Position numbers and translations under genes: made by a program | Notes under the pieces: model-generated | The model's database searches: none | What the model saw: the letters and a program-made list of their open reading frames with translations, nothing else | What the model was told of the DNA's origin: nothing | Shown: in pieces, positions 8,271 through 58,118 of the stretch | How positions within the stretch are numbered: the first letter of the stretch is position 1 | Layout of the letters: the number at the start of each line of letters is the position of its first letter | Source: Raja brachyura | Taxonomy: Eukaryota | Direction: 5' to 3' | Assembly: GCA_963514005.1 (NCBI GenBank) | Contig: OY740797.1 | Coordinates: 24,800,001 to 24,864,000 of the forward strand | Length of the DNA stretch: 64,000 bases

Positions 8271-8322
8271 ATGATGACACGTGTCTTACTGCAATTGATT
8301 GTTCTTCACGTCAGCTGCGCCG
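8271..8322 (+). CDS. Gene A exon 1, signal peptide MMTRVLLQLIVLHVSCA
   Basis: ATG, hydrophobic core, phase-1 donor G|gtatat; ends 172 bp upstream of the V exon. Confidence 0.75.
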
Positions 8323-11300
8323 GTATATTTTACTCTTAGAGTCAAACCAGACAGTCAAACCGAGACTTAGTTATCAATTTATAAGTTTGCTAACCCTTTA
8401 TCTTTATTTTTTTTCTCGTACAATTTTTTACTAATTTGGTCATTACCTCAGTTTAATCCTAAGCCTTATAGTTTGATTTTTCGTTTCCCGACAGCTGGTG
8501 ACAATGGTCTGTTCAACGTAACACAAGTTCCAGAAGCTGTTTTGATGCGGGGTGACTCGGCAGTGCTTTACTGCATTTATCCAATCTTCTCAGACAACAG
8601 GCCGTTCAAAGTGCATTGGTGGAGAGATGGAGATAATAGATTCCTGGATGAAAGTGCAGACAAAAGAATCCAGTTTTATTTCCTGAGACGCGGAAGCGCT
8701 GTCTTACGGCTGGGAAACGTGACAGCGAAGGACGCGGGGCTCTATTTTTGCAGCTTGACGCGTACCAACGTTTTTAACGGGACTGGCACAAAGCTGGTAG
8801 TTTACGGTGAGTTTTGGGGAGAGGAGTAAGCCAGATCGGTCAACTTCACCAAGTCAAAGTGATAAGCTCAATCACGTTGAAGAAATTGCGCTTTCTTCAT
8901 TATCTGTGTCCTTTGAAATAATATGATTTATGTGATGGGTTGGATAGTGTTTTTGACGCAATTACCAAATAATCCGAATAGACTGATTGAGAGAGTAAAT
9001 GACGCCTTCCACATCTTCTGCTTGACAGAATTATAAAACCTTTTGCGTATATTTTAGATTTGCTTCAACGCAGAGGGAATGGTGTTACTGAAACCAACGA
9101 CACACGGCACAGGTAGTAGAGATTGAAAATATGTACGGTTCCGAATGTGGTACTGATCAAGGAGATTATTTTTTTTATTGATTTATTTGCAGCTGTTATC
9201 TTTTTTTATCTAAAGTGTAAGGAATTGCAAGTATAAGGAATTTCAAGTGTCAGGAATTACAAAATCAGAGAATCATACAACACAACAACTGGCCCGTTCT
9301 GCCCACGTTGTCTCTGCCCACCGTGCTACTTGTATATGTTGATGCTGTTTGCCTGCATTAGGCCCATATCCTTCTATAACTCTTCTGCGTAATTACCGGT
9401 CTAAGGAAATTTAAATGTTGTTATTGTACTGCACCCTCTCCGGTGGTAGATGTTCCAGGTATGCAAAACTTCCTCTTCTCCTTTACATTTTTCCCCTTTT
9501 ACCTAAAAACCATGCCACATAGTCCTTAATTCCACTATACTGAGGAAAAGACCCCGTCTATGCTACGAGTGGCCCCGATATTTAAAACAAAAACGTTTAT
9601 TACGTTACTCCTCTGCTTCCTTCCTTCCATTGAGAATAAACGTAGTTTACCAAATGTCTCGTTATAAAAAGGCCCTCTGTTTCAGTCAACATTCTGGTGA
9701 AACTCTTTTGCACTTGCTCAATTGGTACCATGTTTAACCGTAGTATAAGTTTGGTCACATTTCCGATTGTCCCGGATTACTTGAAATTATATAGGAACCG
9801 TGAAGCGAGTGAATCATTGAGGAACGCATAATTCAAGATCTATCTTGTTACATTTAGTCTGCAGACGGGTCACGACCCGAAACATCACCTATTCCTTTTA
9901 TCCAGAGATGCCTTCTGCGCGCTGAGTTACTCCAGCTTTTTGCCAGGTTTAACCCAGCTACTACAGTTCCTTCCTACACATTGTTGCATTAACGTGTATT
10001 CTCCGCTCACCTTCCAATCGATTGAAATGGCATTAAGAATATATAGATATTGAAAACGGTTTGTTTATAAATGGTGCAAATGTACTTGTAGTTTGTATCT
10101 CAAGCCTACGTTTTGGGCGGGTTACGCAGACGCTGATCACTGTTTGAGTTGTTGTAAATGGAAAGGGTTGATGACTTTTCCACGAATGAATGTCATTGAT
10201 ATCGTGTGGGAGGCCTTAACATTCCATCCAAATTCTTAAGGGAATGTGTTGGTCTGGGATTATTGCTCTCGAAGTAATGCAACTACTTTCTTCTGCGCTT
10301 AACGGAATTCTAAATAGCAAGCTGTTCCCTCTGGTCCAAGTTTACAATATTTTTTCACACAAGGACGCACATTTTTCTGACCTAACTCAAACATATTTTT
10401 GACCTCAAGTTATGCTGAATAAATCTTCTGCTCGATTTATTTATTTCAACAACGATAAAGAATATATTTGTAAAATTGTGATAGTCGAGCTGTTATTATG
10501 GGTTACATTTTGTACAATTATCTCATCAAATTATAATAGAAATCGTGAAGACGTTTAGAAAATTCAAGCTAATACTTTGGTTCTTAATGTCTGTGCATGG
10601 AACAGAGCGCATCATTTACTTGCGCTGCGAGTAGAAACAGAAACGATATGATATTTATGAAGGTACACAAAAGGCTGGAGAAACTCCGCGGGTGCAGCAG
10701 CATCTAAGGAGCGAAGGAGATAGGCCACGTTTCGGATCGAGACCCTTCTTCAGACATTTATGAAGTAAGGTAACTGTTGTATAACAGACCCAAACTGTAA
10801 AATCAGGGCATACAATAAAGAGGCTACAATGAACTTTGATTCAAGTCACGAAAATCACCGGACTGCTGAAATTTAAAAATCGTTTTATTTTCCAGATCCT
10901 CCAACTCCTCTGAGCTTGACCACCATGCTGCCGGAGAATACATCAGTTACTCTAATTTTCGTTTGTAAAACAGCCACGTTCTTTCCCCTTGATCTGAATA
11001 TTACTTGGTACAAAAATGGGTCAGATATGAAACCTAAAATGGAGCCAAAGAAAACACAGACAGCATCAGGACTCTACGGGGCTACGAGTTGCCTGACGGA
11101 GACTGAACATGTGGAGAGCGGAACAGTTTATACCTGCCAGGTGTCTCATATTTCTCTTCCAAATCCAATCAATATCAGCTACACTTTCTACAGCCGAGGT
11201 AAGAACAGCGATATATTTTCAGTATAATTTGGCTACTTAGAACCATGATTACCTCATAAACACAGGCACAGATAATAAATAACAATATTGTTCGTTTAGC

Positions 11301-14300: not shown

Positions 14301-15252
14301 TGCCACCCTGAACACAGAGAACATCAATCCGCCTTTGGAAGTGAACTACGAAGTCATACACATCAATATAATGAAGGGCTCCAAAAGACCGATTTTCTAT
14401 CGGCATCCTGGATTTAAAAATAAACAAATTATAGGAATATGTATTTCTGTGTTGTATGATACCTCGTTTGTAACTGCTCAGTCGCAGCGAGCGAAATCTA
14501 CCTTGGATTATCCTCCCACTCTCTTGAATTTAATTTTTAAGGTTCCTGTAGATTTGGGATCGTAATTCACAGCAACATTCAATTTCCATAATTACATTCC
14601 CAATATTCCACGAATATTGCATCGTCTGGAACTCAGCTTTGGGCACGTCAGGGCCGTCATAAACGTAATGACGGCGGGGAAAATTTTCTGGCCTCACTGT
14701 ATAATCACATGATGAAGAGTAAATAAGTGTTTTTATAATTTTCAATTTCTGGATATTCCACAATATGGCCCGTTGTACCGACACAGCTATACATCACTAC
14801 ATGTTGCGCTCTGCAACATGGCTATATACACACCTCGAAATAATTAGTATTGGTTGTAGCCAAATATTTGGGGAGGGGGGGGGGGGGGGGGGGTTTCTGC
14901 ACCTCAATGATGCTTTCATTATATGTCATATGCACACAACTGGGATTGCACAGAAATGGAAAACAGCAACTGCGCTGATGGGCAATGTTCCTGTCTGTTT
15001 ATTTCGCGTCGAAAAGTCAAATTGATATATTTTTTAAAGACAGAATGACGCTGTTGAACTGATTACCTGTCCTATTATATAATACTGTACAGATGTTAAA
15101 ATTTACCACTATTTTTTAAATTGTTTACAGTTTTTGTTGATCCACTTCATAACACGAGTTTTGGTTGCATAAGAGCAGGATTGATACCTATCGCAATCGT
15201 TATTTTCATTGTGATATATAAAGATAAGACTTCGAACCTATTTGATCTCTAG
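8271..15252 (+). CDS. Gene A: non-rearranging VJ-C1 IgSF receptor (NKp30/SIRP-like), Arg-containing TM, short tail; predicted 262 aa
   Basis: Exons 8271-8322 (leader), 8495-8806 (VJ), 10896-11198 (C1) and 15131-15252 (TM plus read-through tail to TAG). All introns GT-AG and phase 1, joined frame open. An alternative or vestigial last exon lies at 17939-18003. Confidence 0.8.
8495..8806 (+). CDS. Gene A exon 2, V-set Ig domain with in-exon J-like strand
   Basis: Acceptor tttcccgacag, donor G|gtgagt. Motifs VTQ..GDSAVLYC, VHWWRDG, SAVLRLGNV..DAGLYFC, FNGTGTKLVVY. Confidence 0.95.
10896..11198 (+). CDS. Gene A exon 3, C1-set Ig domain
   Basis: Acceptor ttttattttccag, donor G|gtaaga. C1 motifs CKTATFFPLDLNITWYKNG, GLY..TS.L, YTCQVSHISL. 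Confidence 0.95.
12308..12723. repeat. ~74-bp inverted repeat pair around a ~270-bp spacer (MITE-like foldback)
   Basis: 12308-12381 is an imperfect reverse complement of 12649-12723 (cagccaatccaa.cccaccctataact.aaaccatt.tga.ctgattatatcctcgtaatcg). No clear TSD. Confidence 0.8.
14085..14290 (-). mobile_element. Short 5'-truncated CR1 3' end
   Basis: Reverse complement of the CR1 3' stem-loop (ggctcgaagggtcgaatggcctactcctgcacc) and 8-bp tail repeat; near-identical copies at ~46757-46997 and ~60972-61192. Confidence 0.8.
15131..15252 (+). CDS. Gene A exon 4, stalk + TM + short tail VFVDPLHNTSFGCIRAGLIPIAIVIFIVIYKDKTSNLFDL*
   Basis: Acceptor ttgtttacag, phase 1; ~20-aa hydrophobic stretch with Arg (AGA 15172-15174). 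Ends IYK at the position where the gene C TM exon ends IYR, but the donor position reads G|ataaga, so the frame runs to TAG. Confidence 0.7.
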
Positions 15253-15440
15253 ATTGTTGTAAAATTAACCAATCGGAATTCAGCAATACATTAGTTTAGT
15301 TTAGAGATACAGCGCGGAAACAAGCCCCTCAGCTCACCCAGTCGGCGCGGAACAGCGATCTCCGCAACCTACACACATTAACGACAATTTATAATTATAT
15401 CAAGCCAATTAACCTACAAACCTGTAAATCTCTGGGGGGG

Positions 15441-17485
15441 GAAAGGAACCAGTAAAAATTGGAAAGAGCCCTGGTTTTCAAGGGAAATTGGACATCTTGT
15501 TCGGAAAAAGAGGGAGATCTACAATATTTATAGGCAGCGTGAAGTAAATGAGGTGCTTGAGGAGTATAAGGAATGTAAAAAGAATCTAAAGAAAGAAATT
15601 AGAAAAACTAAAAGAAGATATGAGGTTGCTTTGGCAAGTAAGGTGAAAGTAAATCCAAAGGGTTTCTACAGCTATGTTAATAGCAAAAGGATAACAAGGG
15701 ATACAATTGGTCCATTGGAGAGACCGAGTGGACAGCTATCTGCAGAGCCAAAAGAGATGGGGGAGATATTGAACAATTTCTTTTCTTCGGTATTCACCAA
15801 GGAGAAGGATATTGAATTATGTGAGGTAAGGGAAACTAGTAGAGTAGCTATGGATACTATGAGTTTCAAAGTAAAAGAAGTACTGGCACTTTTGAAAAAT
15901 ATAAAAGTGGATAAGTCTCCAGGTCCTGACAGGATATTCCCTAGGACATTGAGGGAAGTTAGTGTAGAAATAGCCGGGGCTATGACAGAAATATTTCAAA
16001 TGTCATTAGAAACTGGAATAGTCCCCGAGGATTGGCGTACTGCGCATGTTGTTCCATTGTTTAAAAAGGGTACTAAAAGTAAACCTAGCAATTATAGACC
16101 GGTTAGTTTGACTTCAGTGGTGGGCAAATTAATGGAAAAGCTACTTAGAGATAATATATATAAGTATCTGGATAAAGAGGGTCTAATTAGGAACAGTCAA
16201 CATGGATTTATGCCTGGAAGGTCATGTTTGACTAATCTTCTTGAATTTTTTGAAGAGGTTACTAGGGAAATTGACGAGGGTAAAGCAGTGGGTGTTGTCT
16301 ATATGGACTTCAGTAAGGCCTTTGACAAGGTTCCTCATGGAAGGTTGGTTAAGAAGGTTCAACTGTTGGGTATAAATGCAGGAATAGCAAGATGGATTCA
16401 ACAGTGGCTGAATGGGAGAAGCCAGAGGGTAATGGTGGATGGCTGTTTGTCGGGTTGGAGGCAGGTGACTAGTGGGGTGCCTCAGGGATCTGTGTTGGGT
16501 CCTTTGTTGTTTGTCATGTACATCAATGATCTGGATGAAGGGGTGGTAAATTGGATTAGTAAGTATGCAGATGATACCAAGATAGGGGGTGTTGTGGATA
16601 ATGAAGAGGATTTCCAAAGTCTACAGAGTGATTTAGGCCAGTTGGAAAAATGGGCTGAAAGATGGCAGATGGAGTTTAATGCTGATAAATGTGAGGTGCT
16701 ACACCTTGGCAGGACAAATCAAAATAGGACGTACATGGTAAACGGTAGGGAATTGAAGAATACAGTTGAACAGAGGGATCTGGGAATAACTGTGCATAGT
16801 TCCTTGAAGGTAGAATCTCATATAGATAGGGTGGTAAAGAAATCTTTTGGTATGCTAGCCTTTATAAATCAGAGCATTGAGTATAGAAGCTGGGATGTAA
16901 TGTTAAAATTGTACAAGGCGTTGGTGAGACCAAATCTGGAGTATGGTGTACAATTTTGGTCGCCCAATTACAGGAAGGATGTCAACAAAATAGAGAGGGT
17001 ACAGAGGAGATTTACTAGAATGTTGCCTGGGTTTCAACAGCTAAGTTACAGAGATAGGTTGAATAAGTTAGGTCTTTATTCTCTGGAGCGCAGAAGGTTA
17101 AGGGGGGACTTGATAGAGGTCTTTAAAATTATGAGAGGGATAGACAGAGTTAATGTGGACAAGCTTTTCCCTTTGAGAATAGGGAAGATTCAAACAAGGG
17201 GACATGACTTTAGAATTAAGGGACAGAGGATTAGGGGTAACATGAGGGGGAACTTCTTTACTCAGAGAGTGGTAGCGGTGTGGAATGAGCTTCCAGTGGA
17301 AGTGGTGGCGGCAGGTTCGTTGGTATCATTTAAAAATAAATTGGATAGGCATATGGATGAGAAGGGTATGGAGGGTTATGGTATGAGTGCAGGCAGGTGG
17401 GACTAAGGGAAAAAAGTTGTTCGGCACGGACTTGAAGGGCCGAGATGGCCTGTTTCCGTGCTGTAATTGTTATATGGTTATATGG
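15441..17485 (+). mobile_element. Young 5'-truncated CR1 LINE with open RT frame, inserted into a SINE
   Basis: ORF 15553-17406 (NYRPVSLTS, QHGF, DFSKAFD, GVPQGSVLGP, YADD); (TTATATGG)n tail; SINE halves on both sides. Confidence 0.95.
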
Positions 17486-21469: not shown

Positions 21470-21735
21470 TTTAATTTAGTTTAGAGATACAGCGTGGAAA
21501 CAGGCCCTTGGTCCCACCGAATCCGCGCCGACCAACGATAACCCGTGTATCCTACACACTGTGGACATTTATTTTACAGAAGCCAATTAACCTACAAATT
21601 TGCAAGTCCTTGCAATGCGGGAGGAAAGCAGAGCACCGGAGCCGGAGATAACCCAGGGCGTTACAGGGAAAACGTGCAAACTCCGTACAAACAGCACCCG
21701 TAATCAGGATCGATTCCGGGTCTCTGTAAAGCAGA
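21470..21735 (-). mobile_element. tRNA-derived V-SINE/HE1-type SINE
   Basis: Reverse complement of the family at 43548-43830 (gccaattaacctaca..., CR1-like 3' end). Confidence 0.75.
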
Positions 21736-25200: not shown

Positions 25201-25772
25201 TTTTTTCTTTCTCCTCTTGTGTCCGCGTGCTTCCCTTTTCTGCTTCCTGCCTCCCATTCTGTCTACTAGCTTTTGCTATTTGCATCCCTCGCCCCAACCA
25301 TTCTAGTTTAAAGTCTCCCCAGTGGCCTTTGCAAATTTCCCCGCCAGGATATTGGTCCCCCTCGGGTTCAAGTGCAACCCATCCTTTCTGTATAGGTCCC
25401 ACCTATCCCAAAAGAAGTCCCAATGATCCAGAAACTTGAATCCCTGCCCTCTGCACCAGTCTTTCAGCCAAGCATTTATCCTCCACCTTGCTCCATTTCT
25501 ACTCTCACTGTCACGTGGCACAGGCAGTAATCCTGAGATTGTTACCTTTTTGGTCCTTTTCCTCAACTCTCCTCCCAAGTCCTTAAATCCTCCCTTCAGG
25601 ACCTCTTCCCTTTTTTTACCTATGTCATTGGTACCTATATGTACCACGACCTCAGGCTCCTCTCCCTCTGATTTGAGGATATCTTGGACACGTTTAGACA
25701 CGTCCAAGACCTTGGCACCAGGGAGGCAGACCACCATCCTGGTCTCCCGACTGCGTCCACAGAATCGCCTAT
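22288..25772 (-). mobile_element. Young CR1 LINE: 3' part of ORF1 (SGNH esterase) and complete ORF2 (APE endonuclease + RT) with one nonsense codon
   Basis: ORF 25303-25737 has VVVHIGTND and DGLHLN; ORF 22907-25402 has NARS, SETW, GDFN, SDH and YADD. TGA at 22907-22909 where the sister copy has AGA; 30-bp in-frame deletion near 23530; (TTATATGG)n tail at ~22288-22325. Confidence 0.95.
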
Positions 25773-27892: not shown

Positions 27893-28092
27893 NNNNNNNN
27901 NNNNNNNNNNNNNNNNNNNNNNNNNNNNNNNNNNNNNNNNNNNNNNNNNNNNNNNNNNNNNNNNNNNNNNNNNNNNNNNNNNNNNNNNNNNNNNNNNNNN
28001 NNNNNNNNNNNNNNNNNNNNNNNNNNNNNNNNNNNNNNNNNNNNNNNNNNNNNNNNNNNNNNNNNNNNNNNNNNNNNNNNNNNNNNNNNNNN
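27893..28092. other. Assembly gap (200 N)
   Basis: Run of N; the round length suggests a scaffolding gap of unknown true size. Confidence 0.99.
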
Positions 28093-28270: not shown

Positions 28271-28552
28271 CGATTCCAGGAAAACGGTGAGTTTCATTGG
28301 TCGGAAACAGGAGAGTGACGTGAGACACGTGGCAACTATAAACCGATCGGCTATCCACTGCATGCAGGAAGCTGGAAGCAAGGTATAATCCCTCGTCGTT
28401 CCGTATTTTAGTGGTATATATTCCAGAAGTGATTTCTTGGTCATCTTTATACCAGGTAAGTTCACAGTTCTCCGGGAAAAACGGAGCAGTTGTGCAGTTT
28501 AGGACCAGGGAGGGAGTGTTCATCTGTGTAATCTCCAAAGGCGTCGGCGACA
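28271..28552 (-). CDS. Gene B exon 3, C1-set Ig domain
   Basis: Acceptor tattgtctacag, donor G|gtatga. Motifs SPTPL, LNCTTAPFFPENCELTWYKD, GLYLASSFL, YSCHVSHVTL. Confidence 0.95.
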
Positions 28553-46226: not shown

Positions 46227-47970
46227 TAGCAATGTTACAAAATTATGAGATTTTTAAAATCAAGTCTGCAATTTATCCCATCAGATAAAACATAACAATA
46301 AATTAATTTTGACACCTAATTCACTTTCATATCTTCAGCATTAAAAAGGTTATGGCCATTTTCATACTCGGAAATTTGCATCTTGTTCCCTATTGCTTTT
46401 CCATTGAATAAACGCAAAAGCTGTGATCGAGGACTGTCAAAAGCCCATAACCTTCTTAAAGATTAGGAGAACTGAATGACATTTTCAGTTATTATATATT
46501 GAAGCATTCTGAAACGAATATAAAACATCTTACTTGCATGACCTGAAATGAAAGCATATAATTAGTTAATTACCTAATTGTAGTTAATTACAAAATCGAC
46601 CGTTGTGACAGAAATAGTAATAAACACCCAGACTGCCTTGAAAATTCAAAAATGGGATATTCTCAAGATCAGAACTTTAATATTATTGTATTATATGCTT
46701 TAAGTCCGTAACAGATAGGTAAATACATTACAATTTCTATCCATAGAGCAAATCCTTATAGAAACATAGAAACATAGAAAATAGGTGCAGGAGTAGGCCA
46801 TTCGGCCCTTCGAGCCTGCACCGCCATTCAATGTGATCATGGCTGATCATCCAACTCAGTATCCCGTACCTGCCTTCTCTCCATACCCCCTGATCCCTTT
46901 AGCCACAAGTGCCACATCTAACGCCCTCTTAAATATAGCCAATGAACTGGCCTCAACTACCTTCTGTGGCAGAGAATTCCAGAGACTCACCACTCTGGAG
47001 AAGATCAGTTGCTAGCCGGTACATTGGCATATCATAATCAGTAGCATCATCATACTCCTCAGATTTTTAACAATAAGCAACTCTGTACATCTTGTTTTTC
47101 CTCAACTTTTCAATGTTGGCATTGTAAACTACAAGTTTTTGCTCTTCAAACCGACATGACATGTCATTCTACCCATTACTTTCCCATTAAGAATGTCCTG
47201 TAGATTCAATTTCTTAAGAAAAGGATATATTTTTAGATAGCCTAAGTATCCAAATAACAAACTAATTCCATTCACACAAGAATTCACAATATAACAGGAT
47301 TTTTAAATCTCACTGTCATTAATTCATATGCCAGATGGAAGGAATTTGATGTTTAATTCCCATAAATGAATCTAGAAACATCCATTCAATATAATCTTTT
47401 TTTACACAATACATGGGACTAAAACTGATATTTAGTATAAAAATATTGACTATGGGTAGACAATAACAGAACAAATAGACGATTTAGATGATTTTATGAC
47501 GTGATTGTCCCAAAAAAAGAGCATTTAAATCATCTTCGAGTGGGGTTTTCTGGAACGAGATCGATTGCAACGTTGCATTTGCGGTGAATTTTAACCCCAT
47601 ATCGGCAGAAGAAACACTGCCGGTTCGGCCCATATCACATTTTCGCAACGTAAAATTAGATTAAAGCCATCCCAAGAAGCAAGATTTTATGTAAAATATA
47701 CGACATACCCTTTATTTTGTCCCGTCCCTGCGACCCGTCACGTTGTAGGCGTTGAGGGCAATAGAAGTCGCTTTTTATTTTAATCAAATTATTAAATTGT
47801 CTCGCGCTTAAAAAAAAAATCGGGAACGGAAGTCGGATCGATTATTTTTCAGCATCTAGCACCCCGAGGAAATCCGCCTCAGACAGGCAGGAGAAAACTG
47901 GATTTTAATCCCGCCCCCCCCCCCCCCCTCAAAGGCGCCAATGTCGAGCACACGTTATGTAACGTCGCTA
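46227..47970. mobile_element. Non-autonomous TIR DNA transposon, copy 2, with a nested CR1 tail (~46757-46997)
   Basis: TIRs TAGCAATGTTACAAAA ... TTATGTAACGTCGCTA; flanks ttaacag / ttaaaag; long blocks shared with 36896-37926; no transposase ORF. Confidence 0.8.
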
Positions 47971-48098
47971 TTAAAAGGAACGCATTTCTCGGCCATGTCA
48001 TGGGGTGACCGATGTGCTTAGGAGTCAGTGTAGAAGATACCGTGACGATTATTAACCAGACCTCCATCTTTCCCAGCCAGGCCTGCTTCGTCGTCGAT

Positions 48099-48153
48099 AT
48101 GTTTCTGAAAGTGTCACCTTGGACGATGTTTTTCCTTGGAATTTTGAATGCGG
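48099..48153 (+). CDS. Gene C exon 1, signal peptide [18 protein letters not shown]
   Basis: ATG at 48099, phase-1 donor G|gtaaac. Confidence 0.75.
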
Positions 48154-51100
48154 GTAAACTACGACTTCTGTTGCTTTTAATTTATGGTTCTTCAAAATAC
48201 GCAGATATTATAGTTGTACCTTATAATGTCATGCTGAATTGTCCATAAAGTCATGGCTGTTGTATGGGTTCTGGAAAGGAGTGTAATTTACGAAACCTTC
48301 ACGAGGACACAAATAGCGGGCAGAATAATTCGGTTCAATCCATTGTAAATATTTGGTCTGAGTGCAATAAGATTTTTGCCAGCAGTGTTTAATATCCATT
48401 GCTGTATATCAATGACTAAACTGGATTGTGCACCATCTATTGACAGCTGCTGAGAACAGGTCGGGCAAGACGATATCGAATGTTCTACAGAAGCCGGTGA
48501 TCAGTGGCATAAACTTTACCTGTCGGTGTTCCTTCCCCTTCACTGTAAATGTGTCAAACCTAACGGTTTTCTGGTGGAAAGATGGAAATAGAGGCTTCCT
48601 GAAAGAAGATAGCAGGAAAATCTTCATGATAAAGGCAGGAGGCGCCTACCTTCACCTGCTGAATGTCACGGTTTCGGACGCCGGAACATACTATTGTCTT
48701 GCAAAACAAGCGGGCCGAACGGTCGCGGATGGAACAGGAGAGCAACTGATCGTATATGGTGAGCGAACGGTTCTTTAGTTGCAGCTCGAATTTGGATTTT
48801 GCTTCACAAAAGTCTTTAATCCAGAATACAAATGTGCAAAACGTTGGAAAATTATCTAGATTGATTCGTTTGAAAATATAGGTCAGAGGGCATAACAACA
48901 ATGATATTTGAGTTTGTGTATATTGAAGGTAGTGAGTATAAGATGAATACATATATAACGGTTTCAATTTGACACTGAACGCCGAGGCGAGGATCCATCT
49001 GATGTTTTCCTAATGATAATGTTATCAACATATAATCATGTGAATTGAAAGAGCGAGGTTTTTATTTCAACAAAATAATTGAAATACACATTATATTTCT
49101 TTCGTCGAATTAGAGAAACAAGAAATTTTAGTCAAAGCATTCTCTGTAAGCCAGTCAATGTCTGCAACTGTTTATGACTGATTATATTGGGAAGTTTACA
49201 TATTCACAACAGTAATGTGCCTTTGAAGAGGTGAAACTTGAACGTTCATTCGCGCATGTGAGCACAAGAAACAAATGTGCAAATTAGTGCCCTCTTCTTA
49301 AATATCAAGGGAATGCATGTCAAGGGAAAGGGGGGGGGGGGGGGGGGGGGGGGGTCAATTGCGATGAATTACACCTTCGTCTGGGCTCCCGAATTAAAAA
49401 TTATGATGGAATTAAGTAGCGTCGGAACAAATGCTATTGGATGATGTAATCGACTTTTCCCCTTTCTTTTAATTATATTCTTCTCTATTTAGCCGTCCCT
49501 TCTCCTCTGAAGATTGTATCTGTTCGATCTAGAAATGCTGCGACTCATTTCCTGAAAATCCAGTGCAGAACGGCTGCCTTTTACCCGAAAGAATTTAATC
49601 TCACCTGGCATAGAAATGGTTCCATCATCCAATCTGGATTTCGGCATGAACAACATTCAACGGCAGACGGATTGTATGAAGTTAACAGCTCTTTAGATGA
49701 GAAACGGGCAGTCAAAGAAGGAACCGTTTACACATGTAAAATTATTCACCGTTCTATGCTAACTCCAGCAACTGCCAACTACACGGTTCCTCATGAAGGT
49801 AACGTGTCCCACGCATAGTATAATGGATAGTCCACTGGATAATAATATTAATGGTAAAAATAAAATGTGAGGATATTTAAAAGACCGTATCTTCTGCAGC
49901 AAATTAATTTTCCTAGAACTTGTGCAATTTTCATATTTTTTGCCGGAGTAGACAGACGCTGTGCAGTCCATCCAGTCTATGTTGCCTCCCAGAAGATTCC
50001 ATCAATACCGTTCCCGCAGTCGATCGCGCACCCGTAGCCCATTCCCTTTCACGTGATCTACAAGTCCACTCTGATGCCCCCACAAACATCACACGTTCCC
50101 GAGGAATAATGTAAAAATAATCAATTAACTCACCAAGCAGTTCCTTGGTAAAATCTAAGAGAATGTGCAATGTCGATGCGACAGTTCCCGAAGCCAGGCC
50201 TGAGCTCGGATACCTGGAGATGTGAATCAATAGCACTATTGCTGGACCATTAACTCGGTGAAGGTTTTATTTTTGTTCGTTTATGGCTGAAATGTGTAAC
50301 CAATTGCAACTCAGACACAGAAACTACCTAAAAATAATCCGCGCAAATACCGAAATATGAAGTACTACTCCTCCAATTTGTCTGTGGCCTCACTCTGCTA
50401 ACGCAGGATGCCCAGAACATAAAGGTCAGTGTGCGAATGGGAAAGTGATTCTAAATAGTTAGCAACCGGGAAATCCAATAGGCCTTGGCGGACCTCGTGC
50501 ATGTTTTCAGCTAAACGGCCGCAGAATCTACCTTTGTCTCGTTATTGTACGATAGCCCGCGTCAGGAACACTGGATGCTGTAGAGAAGGTGATGGGAGGT
50601 GGGTGAGGGAGGGAGGGAGGGAGGGAGGGAGGATTAAGGGGGGGTGGGGGGTGTCACGCTCACTAAAGAATGAGAGCAGGGTGGAAGTTAGTGGAGTAAA
50701 TAATGCTGCTATACGTTCTGCACAAGTAGCTCCAGCGTAGTTCTCGATGTATTCGAGAAGGAGTTCGGGGATAACGCCAGCGCAGGTTTTGAACAAGCGC
50801 TGTAACCAACAAATGTAACCAACAAAATGGTAGCCAGTAGCTGTGGCTGATGTGAGTGTTCATGCTGCAACTTTAACTTGGAGAAAGTGAGAGGAGTCAA
50901 AAGAGACGTTGTAGAGGGTGACGACAAATTCCTCTAAATATCTGTGGTCTCTTTTCAAGGAAGAAACCGAGGTCATGAGATTGTCCTGCTCCTAACCACT
51001 CTACACCTAGCTTGGGGCTTGGAGGGAGAGATAGATCAGCCATGATTTAATGGCGGAGTAGACATGATGGGCCGAATTGCCTAATTCTCCTATCCTTATG

Positions 51101-52206
51101 ACCTTAATACCCCTCCCCCGCCCGCCCATGCACAGCTCCTCCCAACCCCTCCTCTCTGAAGCCCTCTGCCCCCCACGCCGAGCCTGCTTCTGCACCTCTG
51201 CTCGACCCTAACCTCAGCCCTCACCCCTGTCATGTTTTCACCACCCCCTGACCTCCTTTGCGGTACAGAACGGCCAGTCCTCGACAATTAGTGCTACATC
51301 CTGCACCAGTGCAGAACTCAACTTCACCACTAATTTCCACCCTGCTCTCAAATTCATATGGACTATCTCTGATACCGCTCTATCCTTCCTTTCTCTCTCT
51401 CCATTCGCTCCACCAGCCTCCGCAATCCGAAACATCATCTTCGGGCATTTCCGTCGCCTCCAACCTGATCCCATTATTAATCACATATTTACATCTCCAT
51501 GCCTTTCCGCCTTTTGCAGACTGTTCCGCCACAACTATTGTTCATTCATCCCTTTAAACCCAAACCACCCCATCCCGAGGTACTTTTCTCTACAACTGCA
51601 GGAGATGTAACACCTGCCCCTGTACCTTCTTCCTCGCCTCTATGCACGGACTGCGACAATCTTTCCAGGTTGGACAGCAGTCACATGCACCTTCTCTAAT
51701 CTTATCTACTGCATCCGATGGTCTGGATGCGGGGTCTTGTACAATAGTGTGAAAAGGTGCGGATTCTGCGGCCAACTAGCCGAGCATGCTCAGATCTACT
51801 GGATCTCCCAGTAGCTAAGTATTTGAATCCCCCTTTTCATTCCTACACTGACCTTTCTGCCCGAGGGCCTTGCACAGAGTGGCGAAAGCATATTCGACGA
51901 ACAACACCTCATATTTCACTTGTATAGCATACAAGCCAGCGGCATGAACGTTGAATTCTCTAATTTTAGTAATGCCCACAAGCGCTCACCTCCCTCTCCT
52001 CTCCCTCGCCCTCCCCCCCCCCCCGCCCCCTCCCATTTGCCCCCTTCCTCCTCTAAATGTCGATTTACCAGTCCCACAATTCGCAGCGATGTACCCCCTC
52101 TTGGGATAACGTCGTCCATAACCAACAGTCGGCCTATCAGGGAACCGCCCTGCGTGGGGTCATATCGTGCTAGTCCCGATTTCTCCTGTTTTTTCTTGCT
52201 TCTGCC

Positions 52207-52237
<31 letters not shown>

Positions 52238-55200
52238 ACACACACAATCAGTCTGAAGAAGTGTCCCGACATAAAACTTCACCTCTCCATTTTCTCCAAT
52301 GATGCTACCTGACCCGCTGAGTTACGCCAGCATTTTCAGTCTATCTCTGAGAACTAACTTCTTGGCTCTTGCATTAATTGGGGACTATTCTTGGGGAGAA
52401 GATGTCTGTAATGATTCAATCCTGGCCAGCGTCAGTAACATTAACATCTCCTTAAAGATTTGGTGAACAGAATATATCCAAATGAATGTATTATGTTCCA
52501 CAATTTTCTGTTTCCTAACGGTCATTATGCCACAAAGTTCACTTAAGATCTATTTATTTCACTCCTAATGGCGCCATAAATAGAAATTGTTGCCTTCCAC
52601 GCGGTTCTGGTGAAATCTGTTGAGTGAACATTTGAAATATCTTGCTTTGTTTTCCGCAAAGTCTAATTTGAAATAACTCAATTAAATATAAACATTTGGT
52701 CATCGGTTTAACCTCCCACAGCTGTCGAGGGTTTATCTGCTTCTCTAATCGCTGGAAGTATCGGAGGTGCAGTGTTAATTTTAACGTTCATCGTTATCGT
52801 CGTGATGACAATTATATATAGAGGTATGTTTCTCATCCATTTTTTAACATTGTCATCCCAGTATAGCATTATAATATAATAGTATTGGTAATTACACGAT
52901 TATCTTCATAATAAAGGAAATGAAACATTTCCACGGGCAAAAATTATGATTATAATAAACAGCACCGACTTAACGAAGATATTACATTTTCCATATGACT
53001 AATGTTTGATGATCACATATTTTGAATTCTATGTTTTATTTCGACACATTATCACATAGCAGCCAGCATTTAATTGTACCTATTGGTCAAGATCTGAACA
53101 TCTGTGAACATCTGTGCATTTTGCGGCCGTCGATCATCCGTTCACACTAGCTCTACGTCAACCTACTTTCGCATCCACTCAATACACAGTGGGGGCAATT
53201 TGCAGAGGTCAATTAACCACAAATCCGCACATTCTTGTGATGTGGGTGTATACTGGAACAACGGGTGAAACGGACGTTGTCACGGGGAGAACGTGCCTCA
53301 AACTCCGCATTTACCTGCTGCACCACTGTGTCGTCCAACATTTTGGAAAAAGCGTGGCACAAACAACGTGGTTTAAGCCTTCATACATATGTAGTGAAGC
53401 CGTATATAGTGAAACTCTATCGTGGAATTATCACATGATATTACGTTCTTGGCGTGCTAAAAAGGACACCATGTCGCACGGATATTTATCACTATTATAT
53501 TTTTTCCGAGCAGGTGCAAAGAAGCGTACAGTAAATACAAATCGGACACAAAGTTCGGTAAGGCTAATTTAATAAATGACTATTCCATTTGTGAAATTAG
53601 AGACAGGATTGTGCCTTTGTTGAAACCAAGCCGTTTTAATATAGACCACGTCTTATTCTGTTTGAACGTATTCCCAATCCGTGAAGTTCACAGTACACTA
53701 CACAAAGGAGGACATAAAGAACAATACAAAATGCATTTACAGGAGTTCTCATTTATGATAGATATCATATATATTATTTACACCAGGTGTAGTGAAAGGA
53801 ATATTTTCATTGCACCTTACCGTTTTTGTCCAGCCACAGGCGAGATTCCGGAGTACTGGAGAGTGGCCATGTTGTTTCAAATCAAATCAAATCAAATCCG
53901 TTTATTTGTCATTGCACATCAACTGTACAACGAAATTTCATGTGCATCCCCTTCAATGGTAAACAATAAAAGACACAGGATAAAAAGATTAAAAAAGAAC
54001 AAAACACAATAACACAAACAACCATTTACTCTCACATTTACATTTACTACAAGATCAATGCATGAAATAAGTAATAGATAATAAAAAAAATCACATTATA
54101 TTGCACATTCTAGCAGACAATTTTTTATATGCACCCCGAATTGTGTAGTGTTGCCCGTAGTGTTATCTGTTTGAGTTAAGTTCTCTAATGGCACTTGGGT
54201 AGAAACTGTTAGTTAGTCTGCAAGTGCGGGCCTTCAAAGACCCGTATCGCCTCCCAGAGGGCAGCAGAGTGAAAAGGTGGTTGGCAGGGTGGGATGAGTC
54301 CTCTGTGATGTTTGTCACCCGGCGTAAACATCGGGCCTTGTAAATGTCTTCCAGGGAGGGTAGTTGAGCGTTTGTGATGCTCTGTGCTGTTTCAATAACC
54401 TTCTGTAGTGCCTTCATTCCAGCCACAGTGCAGCTAGCAAACCACACCAGGATGCCATAGGAGAGGATGCTTTCCACGGCGCACTGGTAGAAGGACAGCA
54501 GCAGCTGCTGTGAGACGTTTGCTCTCCGCAGAGTCCTCAGGAAATATAGCCACTGCTGTGACTTCTTTACGAGAGTGATGGTGTTCACTGTCCATGTAAG
54601 GTCCTGGGAGATGTATGTGCCCAGAAACTAAAAGTCAGTGACTCTCTCCACCATGTCTCATTTGATGTAAAGAGGAGCAGGTTCTTCTCTCCTCCTCCTG
54701 AAGTCAATAACCAGTTCTTTTGTTTTGGTTTAGTTGAGTGCCAGGTTATTGTTAGTGCACCAGACAGTCAGTTTTTGGACTTCATCTCTGTAGGCAGACT
54801 CGTCGTTGTTATTTATCAGCCCCACCACAGTCGTGTCATCTGCAAACTTAATGATCCGGTTTGTGCTGTGTGTCGGTGTGCACTCATGAGTGTATATTGT
54901 GTAGAGAATAGGACTCAGCACACAGCCTTGTGGCGCCCGTGTGCTGAGCGTCAGGACTAGGGAGTGATTGGAATTCATCCTGACAGTCTGTGGGCGGTCT
55001 GTTAAGAAGTCCTTGATCCATCTGCATGTGTTGGCATTTACACCCAGGTCAAAGAGTTTGTCCACCATTCTGCTGGGGACGATGGTATTGAATGCAGAAC
55101 TAAAATCTGCAGACAACATCCTCACATATGAGCCGGGGCGCTCCAGGTGAGTCAGTGCAGAATGTAGAGCCATGTTGATGGCGTCTTCTGTTGACCTGTT

Positions 55201-58118
55201 GGCTCTGTATGCAAACTGCTGTTGATCCAGGGTGGGTGGGAGTGAGGATTTAATGTGGGCCAGGACCAGTCTCTCAAAGCACTTCATCACAGTGGAAGTG
55301 AGAGCAACAGGTCTGTAGTCGTTCAAGCTGGTGATATATGTCTTTTTGGGAACAGGCACAATGGTGGCAGTCTTGAAGCATTTAGGGACAGTGCATGTTG
55401 ACAGAGAGAGGTTAAAGATGTCGCTGAATACCTCTGCCAGCTGGTCTGCACAATCCCGCAGTACTCTCCCTGGGATGCCATCTGGGCCAGCAGCTTTCCT
55501 GGGGTTGACGCTGCGGAGTACTCTCCTGACATCCACTGTGCCAGGTCGTCAGTGCTGCATGCGGATGCAGGCGCAGGCTCCGCCTTACTCAGCTCAAAAC
55601 GGGCGAAAAAGTGGTTAAGCTCCTCAGCCAGCAAGTTACTACTGTTGCTGGTGGTTAACCCCCTGTTGCCCTTGTAGTTGGTAAGTTGCTGGATACCTTG
55701 CCAAACACGCCGGGGGTCCCTCTCATTAAAGTGTCCCTCTAGTCTTCTTCCATAGGCTGCCTTTGCCTCTTTGATGACTCTCTTCAGTTTGGATCTGGCA
55801 GTGCTGTACAGTTCATCATTGCCAGGTCCAAAGGCTGAGTTGCGTTCCCTCAGCAGCTTTCTGACATCACTGGTCATCCATGGTTTGCTATTTGGATAAC
55901 ACCTAACCTCTCTTTCGATAGTGACGTTATTGATGCAGTTCTGTATGTAGAACATGACTGTGGATGTGTAGTCTGTTATGTCCTGAATTGCAAAAAGATC
56001 CCACTGGGTGCGCTCAAAGCAATCCTGAAGTTGAGCGGCAACGTCCTCAGGCCAAGTCTTTATGTTTCTCACACTGGGCTTTGTTTTCACGATAAGAGGT
56101 CTGTATGCTGGGGTGAGAAAGAGGGATAGGTGGTCAGACTGGCCGAGGTGAGGGAGGGGAGAGGCTCTGTATCCATCCCTGATGTTGCTGTATATATGAT
56201 CCAATGTATTTTGACCTCTCGTCGGACATGTGACATGCTGGTGGAATTTAGGGAGGACAGTTTTTAGATTTGCCTGATTGAAGTCTCCAGCCACGATGAA
56301 AATCCCATCAGGGTGTGCAGTCTGTAGTTTGTTGATGGTTGTTATCAGGGTGTTCAGTGTTCTTTGTTTAAGCAGGGAAATGGATTGAATCCAAGGCTCA
56401 ATCAGTTGAATCTAAATATAGGTCGGTTAACCACACGTTAGTGGTTGGGAACCGATTGGAAAGACTTCTTCAAGAGAGGATCTACTGACATTTGGAAGAG
56501 AATTGACGAATTGGCGATAGCCGGCACGGCCCAACACGGTTTACTGATGTAATTAAGTTTTCTGAACAGATGACAAAGCAGGGCAGTAGCTGCTGCAAAC
56601 ACGAATCTAAGGAATGCTTGTGATAAAGTCCCTCGTGATAGGTTGATCCAAAAGATCAAGATATACAGGATCCACTGTAACTTGGTGATATTAATTCAGA
56701 ACTGGCTTCTTCAGAGCGACAGAGGTTGGTCGAAGGAAGATCTACCTGAAGGTCTGTGATCAGTGGAATTCCACAATGACCCCTGTTATTTGTGATATAT
56801 ATGTGTGAAAGATACATCTCCTAGACACCTCGTAGACATAAATATAGATGGGTTGTTGAGTAAATTTTCTGAACAACAGAACAGGAGGAGTTGCAGACAG
56901 CGAGAAGGGTTGTCGGAAGATACAGACGGTTATAGATAATCGACAGAAGTGGGTGGAGAAATGGCAGATGGAGCATGTTGGAGTATAACCCGAGCAGTCT
57001 GAGCTGCTGCACTTTGCGATGGCGCATGTAAGGATAATGTCAAGATGCTAAAGTGAATTGATGTGCTGGGAGGTCATGGAGTCCAAGTTCATAGCTCACT
57101 GAAGACGGCAGCACGAAGAGGTAGGTTAGTAAAGATGGCGTATGATATATTTGCCTTCATTGCTACGGCATTGAATATAAAAGTCAAGAAATCATGATAC
57201 AGCTCTCTAAGACTATGGTTAAGCCCCATTTGGAGTTTTCCGTGAGGTTCTGGTAGCCTCATTACAGAAAGCCTTTGGGGGGGGTGCAGAAGAGGTTTAC
57301 CAGAAGCGCTTGGATTACAGAGGTGCAAGTGAACGAAGGGGTTGAATAAACTTGGATAGTTTTTGCTGGAAATTCGGAGCATGAGGGCAGAATTGATGAA
57401 ATGAAAGGCATAGATAGGGTAGACCGTCAGAACCTTTTCCACAAAATAGAAATGTCCAATGCTAGAGGGCATAGCTATAAGGTGTGTGGGAGAATATTTG
57501 ATGGAGGTATACGGGGTAAGTTCTTTACATAGCGATTGTTGTTTGCCTGGAAGGCATTACCGGGTGTGGTGGTGGAGGCAGACAGAATAGTGGCGTTTAA
57601 GAGGCATTTAGATGGACATATGCACAATGAAAAAGGGTTATGGATCATGTACAGATATATGAGATCAGTTTAACATGGCATCGTGTTCAGCACAAACATT
57701 TTGGGCCGAAGAGCGCGTTCCTATGCTGTACTATTCTATGTTCCATATTATGTGCAGTTATCATTTTGATCTGTCCAGTTGCCCCACAGTCGATTAGACT
57801 CTGGAAATTGGTCTTCGTGCGAGAAGGCATTCGACACAAAACGAAAAATATTCGTCCCTCGTTTATTCTTGCCAGTGCATTCCACGCAAAAGCTTCATTT
57901 GTGGTGTAACTAATCTTAAAATGTTCATGAATTTCCAGGAAGAAGGTGAGAACGTTAGCGGTAATCTGATGTACGCCCATTTGGATCTTGTTCGCAGCAA
58001 AGAATATGAGAAACCTGAAGAGCAAGTGGAGAGGCCTGTGTATGCCAAGGTAAAGTACGTTTCACGCTTTCACTCTACACATCTGAGAATACAGATACGC
58101 CTTACTCGGAGAAATTAG
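48099..58118 (+). CDS. Gene C: non-rearranging VJ-C1 IgSF receptor with uncharged TM and ITIM-bearing tail (inhibitory, SIRP-alpha-like signalling); about 330 aa
   Basis: Exons 48099-48153, 48447-48758, 49493-49798, 52722-52823, 53514-53557 and 57939-(58049/58054/58118). All GT-AG, phases 1,1,1,1,0, open frame. The 3' end is ambiguous: stop at 58118 by read-through, or a further exon from 58774. Confidence 0.88.
48447..48758 (+). CDS. Gene C exon 2, V-set Ig domain with J-like strand
   Basis: Acceptor tattgacag, donor G|gtgagc; 312 bp, same as gene A. Motifs [38 protein letters not shown]. Confidence 0.95.
49493..49798 (+). CDS. Gene C exon 3, C1-set Ig domain (absent from the ORF track)
   Basis: Acceptor ttcttctctatttag, donor G|gtaac. 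Hand translation: [43 protein letters not shown]...[10 protein letters not shown]...[26 protein letters not shown]. Confidence 0.95.
50145..50427 (-). repeat. Inverted duplication, copy B (partner 42926-43211), inside gene C intron 3
   Basis: Reverse complement of 42926-43211. Confidence 0.9.
51180..52345 (+). mobile_element. Degenerate Penelope-like retroelement (RT and GIY-YIG remnants, terminal repeat)
   Basis: Remnants reading [17 protein letters not shown] and SNLIYCI..GC..LY; ends in the ctgaagaag..gatgct.cctgacccgctgagttac terminal repeat. An oppositely oriented remnant lies at ~50350-50990. Confidence 0.75.
52722..52823 (+). CDS. Gene C exon 4, transmembrane [34 protein letters not shown]
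   Basis: Acceptor acctcccacag, donor G|gtatgt, phase 1/1; long uncharged hydrophobic stretch. Confidence 0.9.
53514..53557 (+). CDS. Gene C exon 5, membrane-proximal cytoplasmic [15 protein letters not shown]
   Basis: Acceptor ttttttccgagcag, donor TCG|gtaagg, phase 1/0; basic stop-transfer residues. Confidence 0.8.
53876..56357 (-). mobile_element. Rex1/Babar-type LINE, 5'-truncated and frameshifted, nested in an old CR1 within gene C intron 5
   Basis: ORFs 55323-56294 ([12 protein letters not shown]), 54730-55536 ([23 protein letters not shown]) and 54163-54588; (GATTT)n tail at ~53876-53897. Confidence 0.9.
56360..57750 (+). mobile_element. Old degenerate CR1 LINE
   Basis: Decayed CR1 RT-like text continuing from ~53830-53875 across the Rex1 insertion; ends with gggccgaag and a ctatgtt-type tail. 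Confidence 0.75.
57939..58054 (+). CDS. Gene C exon 6, tyrosine-motif exon [37 protein letters not shown](VK)
   Basis: Acceptor atttccag, phase 0. LMYAHL fits the ITIM consensus (I/V/L/S)xYxx(L/V); PVYAKV is ITIM-like. Candidate donors at 58050 (AAG|gtaaag) and 58055 (AA|gtacgt). Confidence 0.85.

Follow-up and report, generated by a model that had tools for sequence, protein, structure and literature searches.

Judged by its sequence, the window, which is the whole stretch of 64,000 nucleotides analysed here, carries three members of an old, unnamed and non-rearranging VJ-C1 family of sharks, rays and chimaeras, whose products would work most like the SIRP or NKp30 receptors. The three paralogues, gene A and gene C on the forward strand and gene B on the reverse strand, each contain a leader exon, one VJ exon and one C1-set exon, and we consider it probable that they code for type I membrane glycoproteins, germline-encoded receptors from a multigene family that extends across the Chondrichthyes.

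Three genes with a common exon plan

The exons of the three genes were read from the sequence, and the junctions between leader, VJ, C1 and transmembrane (TM) exons were of the AG...GT type and in phase 1 throughout. The V exons matched the Pfam V-set profile with E-values of 3e-8 (gene A), 8e-11 (gene B) and, more weakly, 3e-4 (gene C, which also matched Ig_3 at 3e-7), and the C1 exons matched C1-set at 5e-12, 5e-12 and 4e-9, respectively. A J-like strand was present inside each V exon, namely GTGTKLVV in gene A, SNGTRIIV in gene B and GTGEQLIV in gene C. The paralogues share 34–35% identity in the V and 35–39% in the C1 domain. As indicated by a motif scan and by tblastn with 54 family proteins, the window contains no V or C1 exon of this kind beyond these six; all searches were run exon by exon or with natural homologues as queries. 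Scanning the window for a heptamer-spacer-nonamer arrangement yielded one weak match at 21557, compared to 0.8 expected by chance, and no recombination signal sequence (RSS) flanking any of the three V exons. Neither the open frames of the C1-TM introns nor tblastn revealed a second C domain. The earlier note had proposed this exon plan with phase-1 introns, a lack of RSS at the V exons and a germline-joined VJ unit followed by one C1 domain, all of which agree with the exons, Pfam matches and splice sites reported here. The introns and intergenic spacers are filled by LINE and LTR elements.

Gene A starts with a leader exon at 8271–8322 (ATG at 8271), which codes for a hydrophobic signal peptide and ends in a phase-1 G|GT donor, followed by the VJ exon at 8495–8806 (AG acceptor, GTGAGT donor, phase 1), the C1 exon at 10896–11198 (both ends in phase 1) and the stalk/TM exon at 15131–15252. 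The C1 exon matched Ig heavy chains at 1e-16 and SIRPα/γ at 4e-12 in phmmer searches. The last exon codes for the TM segment FGCIRAGLIPIAIVIFIV, which contains the Arg already mentioned in the earlier note, at a position where the aligned TM segments of orthologues have G or A. The splice donor after this exon is lost by the presence of GAT in place of GGT, and the frame continues to a TAG stop at 15250, leaving a tail of 10 residues. No ITIM-like or fossil tail exon was found downstream. Across both Ig exons, gene A is 86–87% identical (VJ exon 87%) to XP_055505048.1 of Leucoraja erinacea without any disruption, in line with the cartilaginous-fish host assumed before, more precisely a skate. 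Decay of this copy, instead of a role as an activating receptor, is conceivable in view of a LINE located 130 nt past its stop and of the RefSeq model of its Leucoraja orthologue, in which the C1 donor is read through and the TM is not reached.

Gene B is encoded on the reverse strand by a leader exon at 32788–32857 (ATG at 32857, phase-1 G|GT donor), a VJ exon at 32294–32617 and a C1 exon at 28271–28552, whose splice sites were read. The VJ domain was modelled by AF2 with a pLDDT of 88, and its best identity was 61% to a Mobula homologue. An assembly gap (27893–28092) starts 179 nt downstream of the C1 donor and falls within the expected C1-TM intron, which spans 3–4 kb in genes A and C; no exon abuts it and no frame crosses it. 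Searching the reverse strand from 28200 to 18000 for a TM segment or an ITIM tail returned nothing significant. An AT-rich hydrophobic frame at 27621–27680 was considered as the TM of gene B and rejected, with an E-value of about 2 and a position after a stop.

Gene C is complete with seven exons, comprising the leader (48099–48153, assigned from the sequence), the VJ exon (48447–48758), the C1 exon (49493–49798, splice sites read), a stalk/TM exon (52722–52823, phase-1 donor G|GTATGT) and three cytoplasmic exons. Its VJ domain is 52–56% identical to those of Heterodontus and Chiloscyllium orthologues. A juxtamembrane exon of 16 residues at 53511–53557 was the top candidate of a scan for splice sites and frame, with similarity to the segment GGKRTSLNTSQHAD in XP_067905931.1 of Heterodontus; it would join the phase-1 TM exon to the phase-0 exon containing the ITIM. 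The latter (57939–58049) was detected by tblastn to family tails and codes for the ITIM LMYAHL, followed after 23 residues by PVYAK, and the last exon (58162–58293) contains LAYASL, VIYSGV and a TAA stop, with 40% identity to the final 42 residues of XP_067905931.1 by tblastn. Together, the two cytoplasmic segments matched this protein with a joint E-value of 1.7e-7. A previous model had let the gene end at 58118, which is superseded by the orthologue homology supporting a phase-0 splice from 58049 to 58162 and an end of the gene at 58293. The tail thus contains two units of an ITIM and a second tyrosine motif, LMYAHL/PVYAK and LAYASL/VIYSGV. Of the uncharged TM and single ITIM previously ascribed to gene C, the uncharged TM was retained, but the number of canonical ITIMs rose to three (LMYAHL, LAYASL and VIYSGV).

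A family of cartilaginous fishes

Proteins with the layout leader-VJ-C1-TM-ITIM were found in sharks, rays and one chimaera, at least 15 species in total, from the genera Heptranchias, Heterodontus, Scyliorhinus, Carcharodon, Cetorhinus, Chiloscyllium, Mustelus, Mobula, Hemitrygon, Hypanus, Leucoraja and Callorhinchus, which answers the earlier suggestion to look for further chondrichthyan sequences. Searching 1.84 billion proteins with a V profile yielded single-V matches of 224–450 amino acids, with the V domain at residues ~26–126. The score of the family profile drops sharply from 203 bits for the last member to 63 bits for the first outsider, and no bony-vertebrate protein exceeded 63 bits in this search, which was limited by its word index. 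Two C1 domains were present in 0 of roughly 50 homologues examined. For the homologue P0056, AF2 models were confident for both V and C1, and a two-copy complex prediction with residues 22–226 scored 0.01, a value which says nothing either way about a homodimer. The automatic RefSeq names are inconsistent, including SIRPα-like, tapasin-related-like, Ig lambda-like, NCR3LG1-like and CD276 homolog.

Separate V and C1 trees, as proposed earlier, were built from family members only. They agree in placing genes A, B and C each in a separate clade together with shark and ray members (SH-aLRT 95–99), and by this placement the three genes represent three lineages older than the shark/ray split. Because both trees assign A, B and C to the same separate clades, the V and C1 domains have stayed together since before that split. 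Most tails of the family consist of units of an ITIM and a second tyrosine motif. In nine members, distributed over sharks, rays and chimaera, the TM contains an Arg and the tail, 6–41 residues long, lacks a canonical ITIM, one of them having a lone VGYDAL. The coexistence of ITIM-tailed and short-tailed, Arg-bearing members supports the previous description of a diversified family of the paired type.

Comparison with known receptors

The nearest known proteins are SIRPα in overall features, NKp30 in the V domain (26–28% identity), B7-H6 in the V-C1 unit (25%) and Ig and SIRP proteins in the C1 domain, and the family could be assigned to none of them. NKp30 shares with the family a germline-encoded single V of the VJ type and with gene A an Arg in the outer part of the TM, and its layout is matched by RefSeq isoforms without C1 (V-TM-tail) from four species, among them Mobula, Heterodontus and Scyliorhinus. 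Among the V-only structural matches of two lineages, human NKp30 (6yjp_A) showed the top identity (28% over 99 residues and 26% over 101), with Z-scores tied with those of many other V domains. The characterisation of the V domain as NKp30-like in the earlier note therefore holds weakly, by identity, but not by Z-score or in the sequence searches of the PDB, which were dominated by multi-domain Ig proteins and returned PD-L1 as the best single-domain match of the V exon (2e-5). The three genes might alternatively be members of the shark and ray NCR3 (NKp30) family which Kinlein et al. 2021 (Flajnik laboratory) are said to have described from nurse shark (MT914154–MT914161), and the family would then be known, with only the C1 exon in need of comment. 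We regard this as somewhat unlikely, since a C1 exon is present in each of the three genes and in most homologues, the tails are mostly long and contain ITIMs, and NCR3-like was not used for any member in any source naming the homologues found. Moreover, the white shark genes labelled NCR3 by Verissimo et al. adjoin AIF1/PRRC2A on chromosome 19, for which the gene table stops at about 115.6 Mb, whereas XP_041048274.1, the family member of this shark, is encoded on a sequence of 193.5 Mb. Homologues of white shark and catshark appear to lie outside the MHC chromosome, and chromosome lengths by themselves assigned no homologue to an MHC paralogon. In 2023 the same laboratory introduced UrIg as a 'novel nonrearranging (VJ-C1) Ig-like gene', which would be odd if a VJ-C1 NCR3 had been published in 2021. 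Within the window, no marker gene of the MHC class III region (AIF1/LST1) flanks the locus.

An origin as cartilaginous-fish orthologues of the SIRP family (SIRPα/β/γ; human 20p13) is suggested by the nearest protein-language-model clusters of the Atlas, which are SIRPα and SIRPα-like (0.96, 202–204 of 256 features), by the commonest automatic RefSeq name of the family, 'tyrosine-protein phosphatase non-receptor type substrate 1-like', and by the C1 match to SIRPα/γ mentioned above. In SIRP proteins, too, C1 follows a V domain that includes a J-like strand, SIRPα carries ITIM pairs in a tail of repeated ITIM-spacer-tyrosine units, and the activating SIRPβ has a charged TM; the two units of gene C and its sister gene A, with a TM Arg and a 10-residue tail, fit this pattern. 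We nevertheless judge SIRP orthology unlikely: SIRP proteins have two C1 domains, compared to one in the family, with no extra Ig exon in the C1-TM introns; SIRP V domains were absent from the 60 best PDB sequence matches of the V exon, as was SIRPα from the top 50 when the V-C1 model was compared by structure; and the family was found only in Chondrichthyes among the searches made. That the genes code for ligands related to B7-H6 (NCR3LG1) or other B7 proteins instead of receptors appears very unlikely to us, even though the V-C1 ectodomain is the same, B7-H6 (4zso_E) shares first place among the two-domain structural matches and has the top identity (Z 16.7, 25% over 191 residues), PD-L1 leads the single-domain matches and several RefSeq names read 'NCR3 ligand 1-like' or 'CD276 homolog'. 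Tandem ITIM units and short-tailed sister genes with an Arg in the TM are hallmarks of receptors, and B7 V domains are not known to contain the G-x-G-T-x-L-x-V J strand present here. It is equally improbable that the three copies are unexpressed relics in a transposon-rich region. Of the public sequencing runs compared with 47950–53400, three consisted of DNA (contigs crossing introns, no exon-exon joints) and one matched by repeats only, no RNA run was listed as containing the locus, and the lost donor of gene A, the missing 3' end of gene B and the LINE and LTR sequences around the exons would suit decay. However, each of the 14 exons modelled has an open frame, canonical splice sites and a conserved phase, the Cys pair, the Trp and the D-x-G-x-Y-x-C typical of Ig domains are retained, and both Ig exons of gene A are undisrupted relative to Leucoraja.

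Other systems resemble the chondrichthyan family in parts of its layout. PRARP, which Fu et al. 2019 reportedly described from chicken and other bony vertebrates (cited in PMC10751288), and the NITRs of teleosts are non-rearranging, with a V domain containing a J motif, a TM and inhibitory as well as activating forms, and the second domain of NITRs is of the I-type, unlike C1. Ig light chains and TCR share the V(J)+C1 ectodomain, whereas the family has V and J in one exon without RSS, and ITIM tails. When the V-C1 model was compared with the PDB by Foldseek, the best 50 matches were Ig light chains (E ~1e-15, 19–23% identity), a ranking which partly reflects the number of antibody chains dominating the PDB. 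UrIg and UrIg2 of elasmobranchs (Flajnik et al. 2023, 2025; PMC12227049) occur in the same animals and share the single-exon VJ, the split leader, C1-type domains and the lack of RSS. In contrast to the large multigene family described here, with one C1 domain and ITIM tails, each is a single gene expressed mainly in liver and gill, UrIg being secreted with three C domains and UrIg2 containing nine to eleven (PMC12227049). The structural match to UrIg2 (9dmx) reached a Z-score of 14.2 at only 19% identity.

Proposed function and significance

In the receptor family which we propose, a signal peptide would be followed by the VJ-type V domain as the ligand-binding end, the C1-set domain, a short stalk, the TM and the tail. 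The ancestral and commonest tail would consist of one or two bipartite units, each made up of an ITIM (L-x-Y-A-x-L/V) and a second tyrosine motif ~23 residues further on, a spacing that would suit recruitment of the tandem-SH2 phosphatases SHP-1 and SHP-2, as in SIRPα. Gene C would be an inhibitory receptor of that type, and gene A a derived counterpart, in which the outer third of the TM acquired an Arg in place of G or A and the loss of the donor left the short tail. Gain of a TM charge together with loss of the tail is the usual route from an inhibitory receptor to an adaptor-dependent activating one or to a decoy, and gene A may likewise have become either an activating receptor depending on an adaptor or a tail-less decoy. 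The cells expressing these receptors would presumably be NK-like or myeloid.

An active search is under way for non-rearranging genes that combine an intact VJ exon with a C1 domain, as relics of the gene split by the RAG transposon (PMC12227049). Few have been described, namely UrIg, UrIg2 and PRARP, and SIRP is a candidate of longer standing. The family adds a large set, at least 400 million years old, with exactly the minimal VJ-C1-TM chain layout and with both inhibitory and activating-type signalling ends, which has been hidden under at least five unrelated automatic RefSeq names. A full-text literature search, which did not cover the text of Kinlein et al. 2021, returned no paper describing it. 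If undescribed, it would provide shark and ray NK-like or myeloid cells with a receptor family that has a name, the origin of paired receptors with a test case in which gene A displays both mutations, and trees on how antigen receptors arose with new V and C1 sequences. Should Kinlein et al. 2021 already cover it, the gain would be limited to annotating genes that were hidden in a single skate genome. More speculatively, and in our view distinctly unlikely, the family may be the surviving membrane-bound VJ-single-C1 stem lineage of the NKp30/B7-H6/SIRP group, from which NKp30 arose by losing the symmetric phase-1 C1 exon, and would then come nearer, as a structural model, to the pre-RAG precursor (VJ+C1+TM) than UrIg genes with their multiple C domains do. 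For the reading of NKp30 as a C1-losing derivative, we refer to the V-TM-tail isoforms in RefSeq.

Exons and immunoglobulin domains of the three genes

The three paralogous genes A, B and C are real, and the architecture proposed for them in an earlier note, consisting of a leader, a germline-joined VJ exon, a C1 exon and a transmembrane (TM) end, is right with some corrections. In a six-frame scan of the 64-kb window, the motifs described in that note co-occurred as a set in six stop-free stretches only. The first stretch of each gene matched V-set/Ig models of Pfam (3e-8 for A, 8e-11 for B, weaker for C) and the second matched C1-set models (5e-12, 5e-12 and 4e-9 for A, B and C), with C2-type models always well behind. 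As read from the DNA, gene A (+) consists of a leader exon at 8271-8322, a VJ exon at 8495-8806 and a C1 exon at 10896-11198; the corresponding exons lie at 32857-32788, 32617-32294 and 28552-28271 in gene B (-) and at 48099-48153, 48447-48758 and 49493-49798 in gene C (+). All three leader exons have an ATG, encode a hydrophobic signal peptide and end in a phase-1 donor, and each VJ and C1 exon is bordered by an AG acceptor and a GT donor. Motif scan, Pfam matches and canonical splice sites thus confirm three VJ-C1 paralogues where they had been placed, and the proposed phase-1 introns were read directly at both ends of each V and C1 exon. Every V exon is closed by a J-like strand (A, GTGTKLVV; B, SNGTRIIV; C, GTGEQLIV), and no RSS adjoins any of them, as had been claimed; the RSS scan returned a single weak match, at 21557, versus 0.8 expected by chance. 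The genes share 34-35% identity in V and 35-39% in C1.

None of the public runs recorded as RNA contains gene C. The runs that do contain it are DNA, with contigs crossing the exon-intron borders and exon-exon joints absent, so the support for the modelled splicing comes from canonical sites, from phase conservation and from RefSeq models of orthologous genes. One of these runs (X1) yielded two distinct contigs over the leader, intron and V start of gene C (48118-48458), with 7 and 30 differences in 341 nt, suggesting that either a divergent haplotype or a close paralogue is present.

Apart from the family, the window contains retroelements and no other gene. Gene A is closely preceded by a Gypsy-type LTR retrotransposon at 2919-7009 (+), the long open frames of which contain reverse transcriptase, RNase H and integrase domains (Pfam 4e-23 to 7e-31 and 1e-11). 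Two inverted copies of one LINE family, at 15382-17403 (+) and 22391-25402 (-), occupy the spacer between genes A and B, which are convergent, and a single protein segment aligns to both of them, at 16408-16692 and 23102-23386, with near-identical subject sequences. A frame at 61300-61950 (+) that matches Pfam ALKBH8_N (9e-8) may be retroelement-derived.

Transmembrane and cytoplasmic ends

The TM exon of gene C (52722-52823, +) encodes an uncharged TM span and ends with a phase-1 donor. Because the ITIM exon at 57939-58049 (+) starts in phase 0, an intermediate exon is required, and a scan for AG...GT intervals of fitting length and frame gave a candidate at 53511-53557 (+), the product of which resembles the juxtamembrane segment GGKRTSLNTSQHAD of the Heterodontus orthologue. 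The ITIM exon contains LMYAHL, followed 23 residues later by PVYAK, and is joined by a phase-0 splice to a last exon at 58162-58293 (+) containing LAYASL and VIYSGV before a TAA stop. This last exon is supported by homology to the tail of the Heterodontus protein XP_067905931.1, showing 40% identity to the final 42 residues and an E-value of 1.7e-7 for the two cytoplasmic segments combined. The gene end at 58118 assumed previously represents read-through of the donor at 58049, and the spliced gene ends at 58293; the uncharged TM and the ITIM tail stand, whereas the single ITIM and the three-prime limit had to be revised. A stretch of the C1-TM intron of gene C (50316-52499) and the segment 53046-53227 consist of very high-copy repeats, with summed contig word depths that range from 10^3 to 10^6 in each of the four runs versus about 5-20 in flanking unique DNA (100-200 in run X3). 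A LINE fragment at 54733-56411 (-) with a reverse transcriptase match (6e-27) lies within the long tail intron.

In gene A, the stalk/TM exon starts at 15131 (+); the short stalk that it encodes is followed by a TM span containing an Arg residue (FGCIRAGLIPIAIVIFIV). Where gene C has the donor AGA G|GTATGT after the TM, gene A reads AAA GAT AAG; with the donor lost, the frame continues to a TAG stop at 15250, leaving a tail of 10 residues. An ITIM-like exon was looked for downstream and none was found; a LINE reverse-transcriptase ORF begins 130 nt past the stop. If the C1 donor of gene A stays unused, the frame remains open for 10 codons before a stop (11199-11230), and the RefSeq model of the Leucoraja orthologue (XP_055505048.1) reads through the same donor; a soluble V-C1 form would be possible in this case.

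On the minus strand, no TM or tail of gene B was found down to 18000. The only assembly gap, a run of 200 N at 27893-28092, starts 179 nt beyond the C1 donor of this gene, and because the C1-TM introns of A and C measure 3-4 kb, it lies within the corresponding intron or missing sequence. The model of gene B, which is incomplete at its end, places neither an exon nor a reading frame over the gap. A strongly AT-rich stretch abuts the gap (26000-27892, GC 0.28) and may have caused the assembly break.

A probable receptor family of sharks, rays and chimaera

Homology searches were run with single exons or natural homologues as queries. When 1.84 billion representative proteins were searched with a profile built from the V exons of A, B and C, about 20 single-V proteins of 224-450 residues with the V domain at about 26-126 were matched, giant multi-Ig proteins being set aside. 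Their sequences read as leader-VJ-C1-TM-tail. Together with the hits of further searches, they represent sharks (Heptranchias, Heterodontus, Scyliorhinus canicula, S. torazame, Carcharodon, Cetorhinus, two Chiloscyllium species, Mustelus), rays (two Mobula species, Hemitrygon, Hypanus, Leucoraja) and the chimaera Callorhinchus. In the databases they are called 'tyrosine-protein phosphatase non-receptor type substrate 1-like', 'tapasin-related protein-like', 'immunoglobulin lambda-1 light chain-like', 'natural cytotoxicity triggering receptor 3 ligand 1-like', 'CD276 antigen homolog' or 'uncharacterized', and such scattered names are the signature of a family unrecognised by annotation pipelines. 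With a profile of 15 family sequences, in a word-index-limited search, scores dropped from 203 bits to the 63 bits of a teleost CEACAM-like protein, which was the first outsider. The Heterodontus RefSeq protein XP_067905015.1 carries at its N-terminus the LINE-derived segment that aligns to both LINE copies between genes A and B, and this model is therefore probably chimaeric.

Gene A is 86-87% identical to XP_055505048.1 of Leucoraja erinacea, which indicates that the window belongs to a skate related closely to this species but probably distinct from it. In separate trees of the V (48 sequences) and C1 domains (46 sequences), built from family members without an outgroup, A, B and C fall into three different clades alike (SH-aLRT 95-99). 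The clade of A contains Leucoraja, Mobula, Heterodontus, Heptranchias and Chiloscyllium in both trees and Hypanus in the C1 tree, B clusters with Mobula and Hemitrygon within a larger clade including sharks, C is joined by Heterodontus and Chiloscyllium, and the Callorhinchus sequences sit in an A/C super-clade. The separate, mixed shark and ray clades indicate that the three lineages predate the shark/ray split, and the concordance of the trees indicates that V and C1 were inherited together. A single 24-kb contig of Chiloscyllium punctatum contains one gene of the A lineage and one of the B lineage, just as A and B lie together in the window.

In most members, a TM of the 'GC-G-GL' type is combined with a tail of 70-150 residues with one or two tyrosine units, L-[TS]-Y-A-x-L and, about 23 residues on, T-x-Y-[AS]-x-T or a variant of it. 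The TM is distinct in nine members, which represent sharks, rays and chimaera: it has Arg at its start and D-H or N-Y at its end, and the tails of these members measure 6-41 residues and lack a canonical ITIM, with a lone VGYDAL motif in one. Inhibitory-type and activating-type forms therefore extend over the whole range of the family, as expected from the earlier proposal of a diversified family with both kinds of ends. The TMs of gene A orthologues are 52-65% identical to that of gene A and have G or A in place of its Arg; gene A would have reached its activating-type state by a separate route, through an Arg substitution in a TM exon of the inhibitory type combined with loss of its donor. 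At the outer TM edge, most members have a Cys (FGC, SGC or AGC), which is retained in gene A (15166-15171) and replaced by Ser in gene C (52752-52757); it could serve as an interchain disulfide or acylation site. RefSeq lists C1-less isoforms for genes of Mobula birostris, M. hypostoma, Heterodontus and S. canicula, and skipping of the symmetric C1 exon (phase 1-1) preserves the frame.

Relation to known receptors and chromosomal location

AF2 modelled the V and C1 domains of a shark homologue (P0056) confidently, and the V exon of gene B with a pLDDT of 88. Foldseek ranked Ig light chains first for the V-C1 model (E about 1e-15, 19-23% identity), which shows that the model has an antigen-receptor-like layout but also reflects the abundance of antibodies in the PDB. 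In a representative-based structural search, the top two-domain matches were tied between an unnamed checkpoint regulator, B7-H6, Rst/Neph1, PD-L2 and butyrophilins, of which B7-H6 (Z 16.7) was the closest in identity, with 25% over 191 residues; UrIg2 reached a Z of 14.2 at 19% identity. The idea of an NKp30-like V domain is only weakly sustained: NKp30 was the best V-only match of the model (Z 13.9, 28% over 99 residues) and had the highest identity to the V domain of gene B (26% over 101), but there its Z was tied with those of NCAM, VNAR and TCR V domains, and sequence searches with the V exon placed PD-L1 first (2e-5). The C1 exon matched Ig heavy chains (1e-16), SIRPα/γ (4e-12) and MHC α3, and protein-language-model features of the whole protein were nearest to SIRPα clusters (0.96).

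By their defining features, none of these groups accommodates A, B and C. NKp30 is without a C domain and SIRPs have two C1 domains, whereas each of the three genes has one; the V domains of B7 proteins are not known to have the J strand that closes the V exons of A, B and C, and rearranging receptors have RSS, which the VJ exons of these genes lack. UrIg genes have at least three C domains, with UrIg described as VJ plus three C domains, secreted and found in liver, and UrIg2 as VJ plus 9-11 C domains with a TM, found in gill and liver (PMC12227049, PMC10751288). The best reading of the sequences is that the family would consist of pair-forming inhibitory and activating receptors, working like SIRP or NKp30-type receptors with the minimal layout of an antigen-receptor chain. 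Full-text searches of open-access papers, which did not extend to Kinlein 2021 (shark NCR3 family genes), Flajnik 2012/2023, Ohta & Flajnik 2015 and Fu 2019 (PRARP), turned up no VJ-single-C1-ITIM family in cartilaginous fish; an earlier description under another name is a fair possibility, though less likely than not.

In the white shark, the genes to which Verissimo et al. gave the label NCR3 are neighbours of AIF1 and PRRC2A on chromosome 19, the gene table of which ends near 115.6 Mb, and the family member of this species is on a 193.5-Mb sequence. Chromosome 13 of the catshark carries the MHC (gene IDs around 1199755xx-1199765xx), and the family gene LOC119970986 is on a 198.8-Mb sequence. 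The family is thus probably located outside the MHC chromosome in both species.
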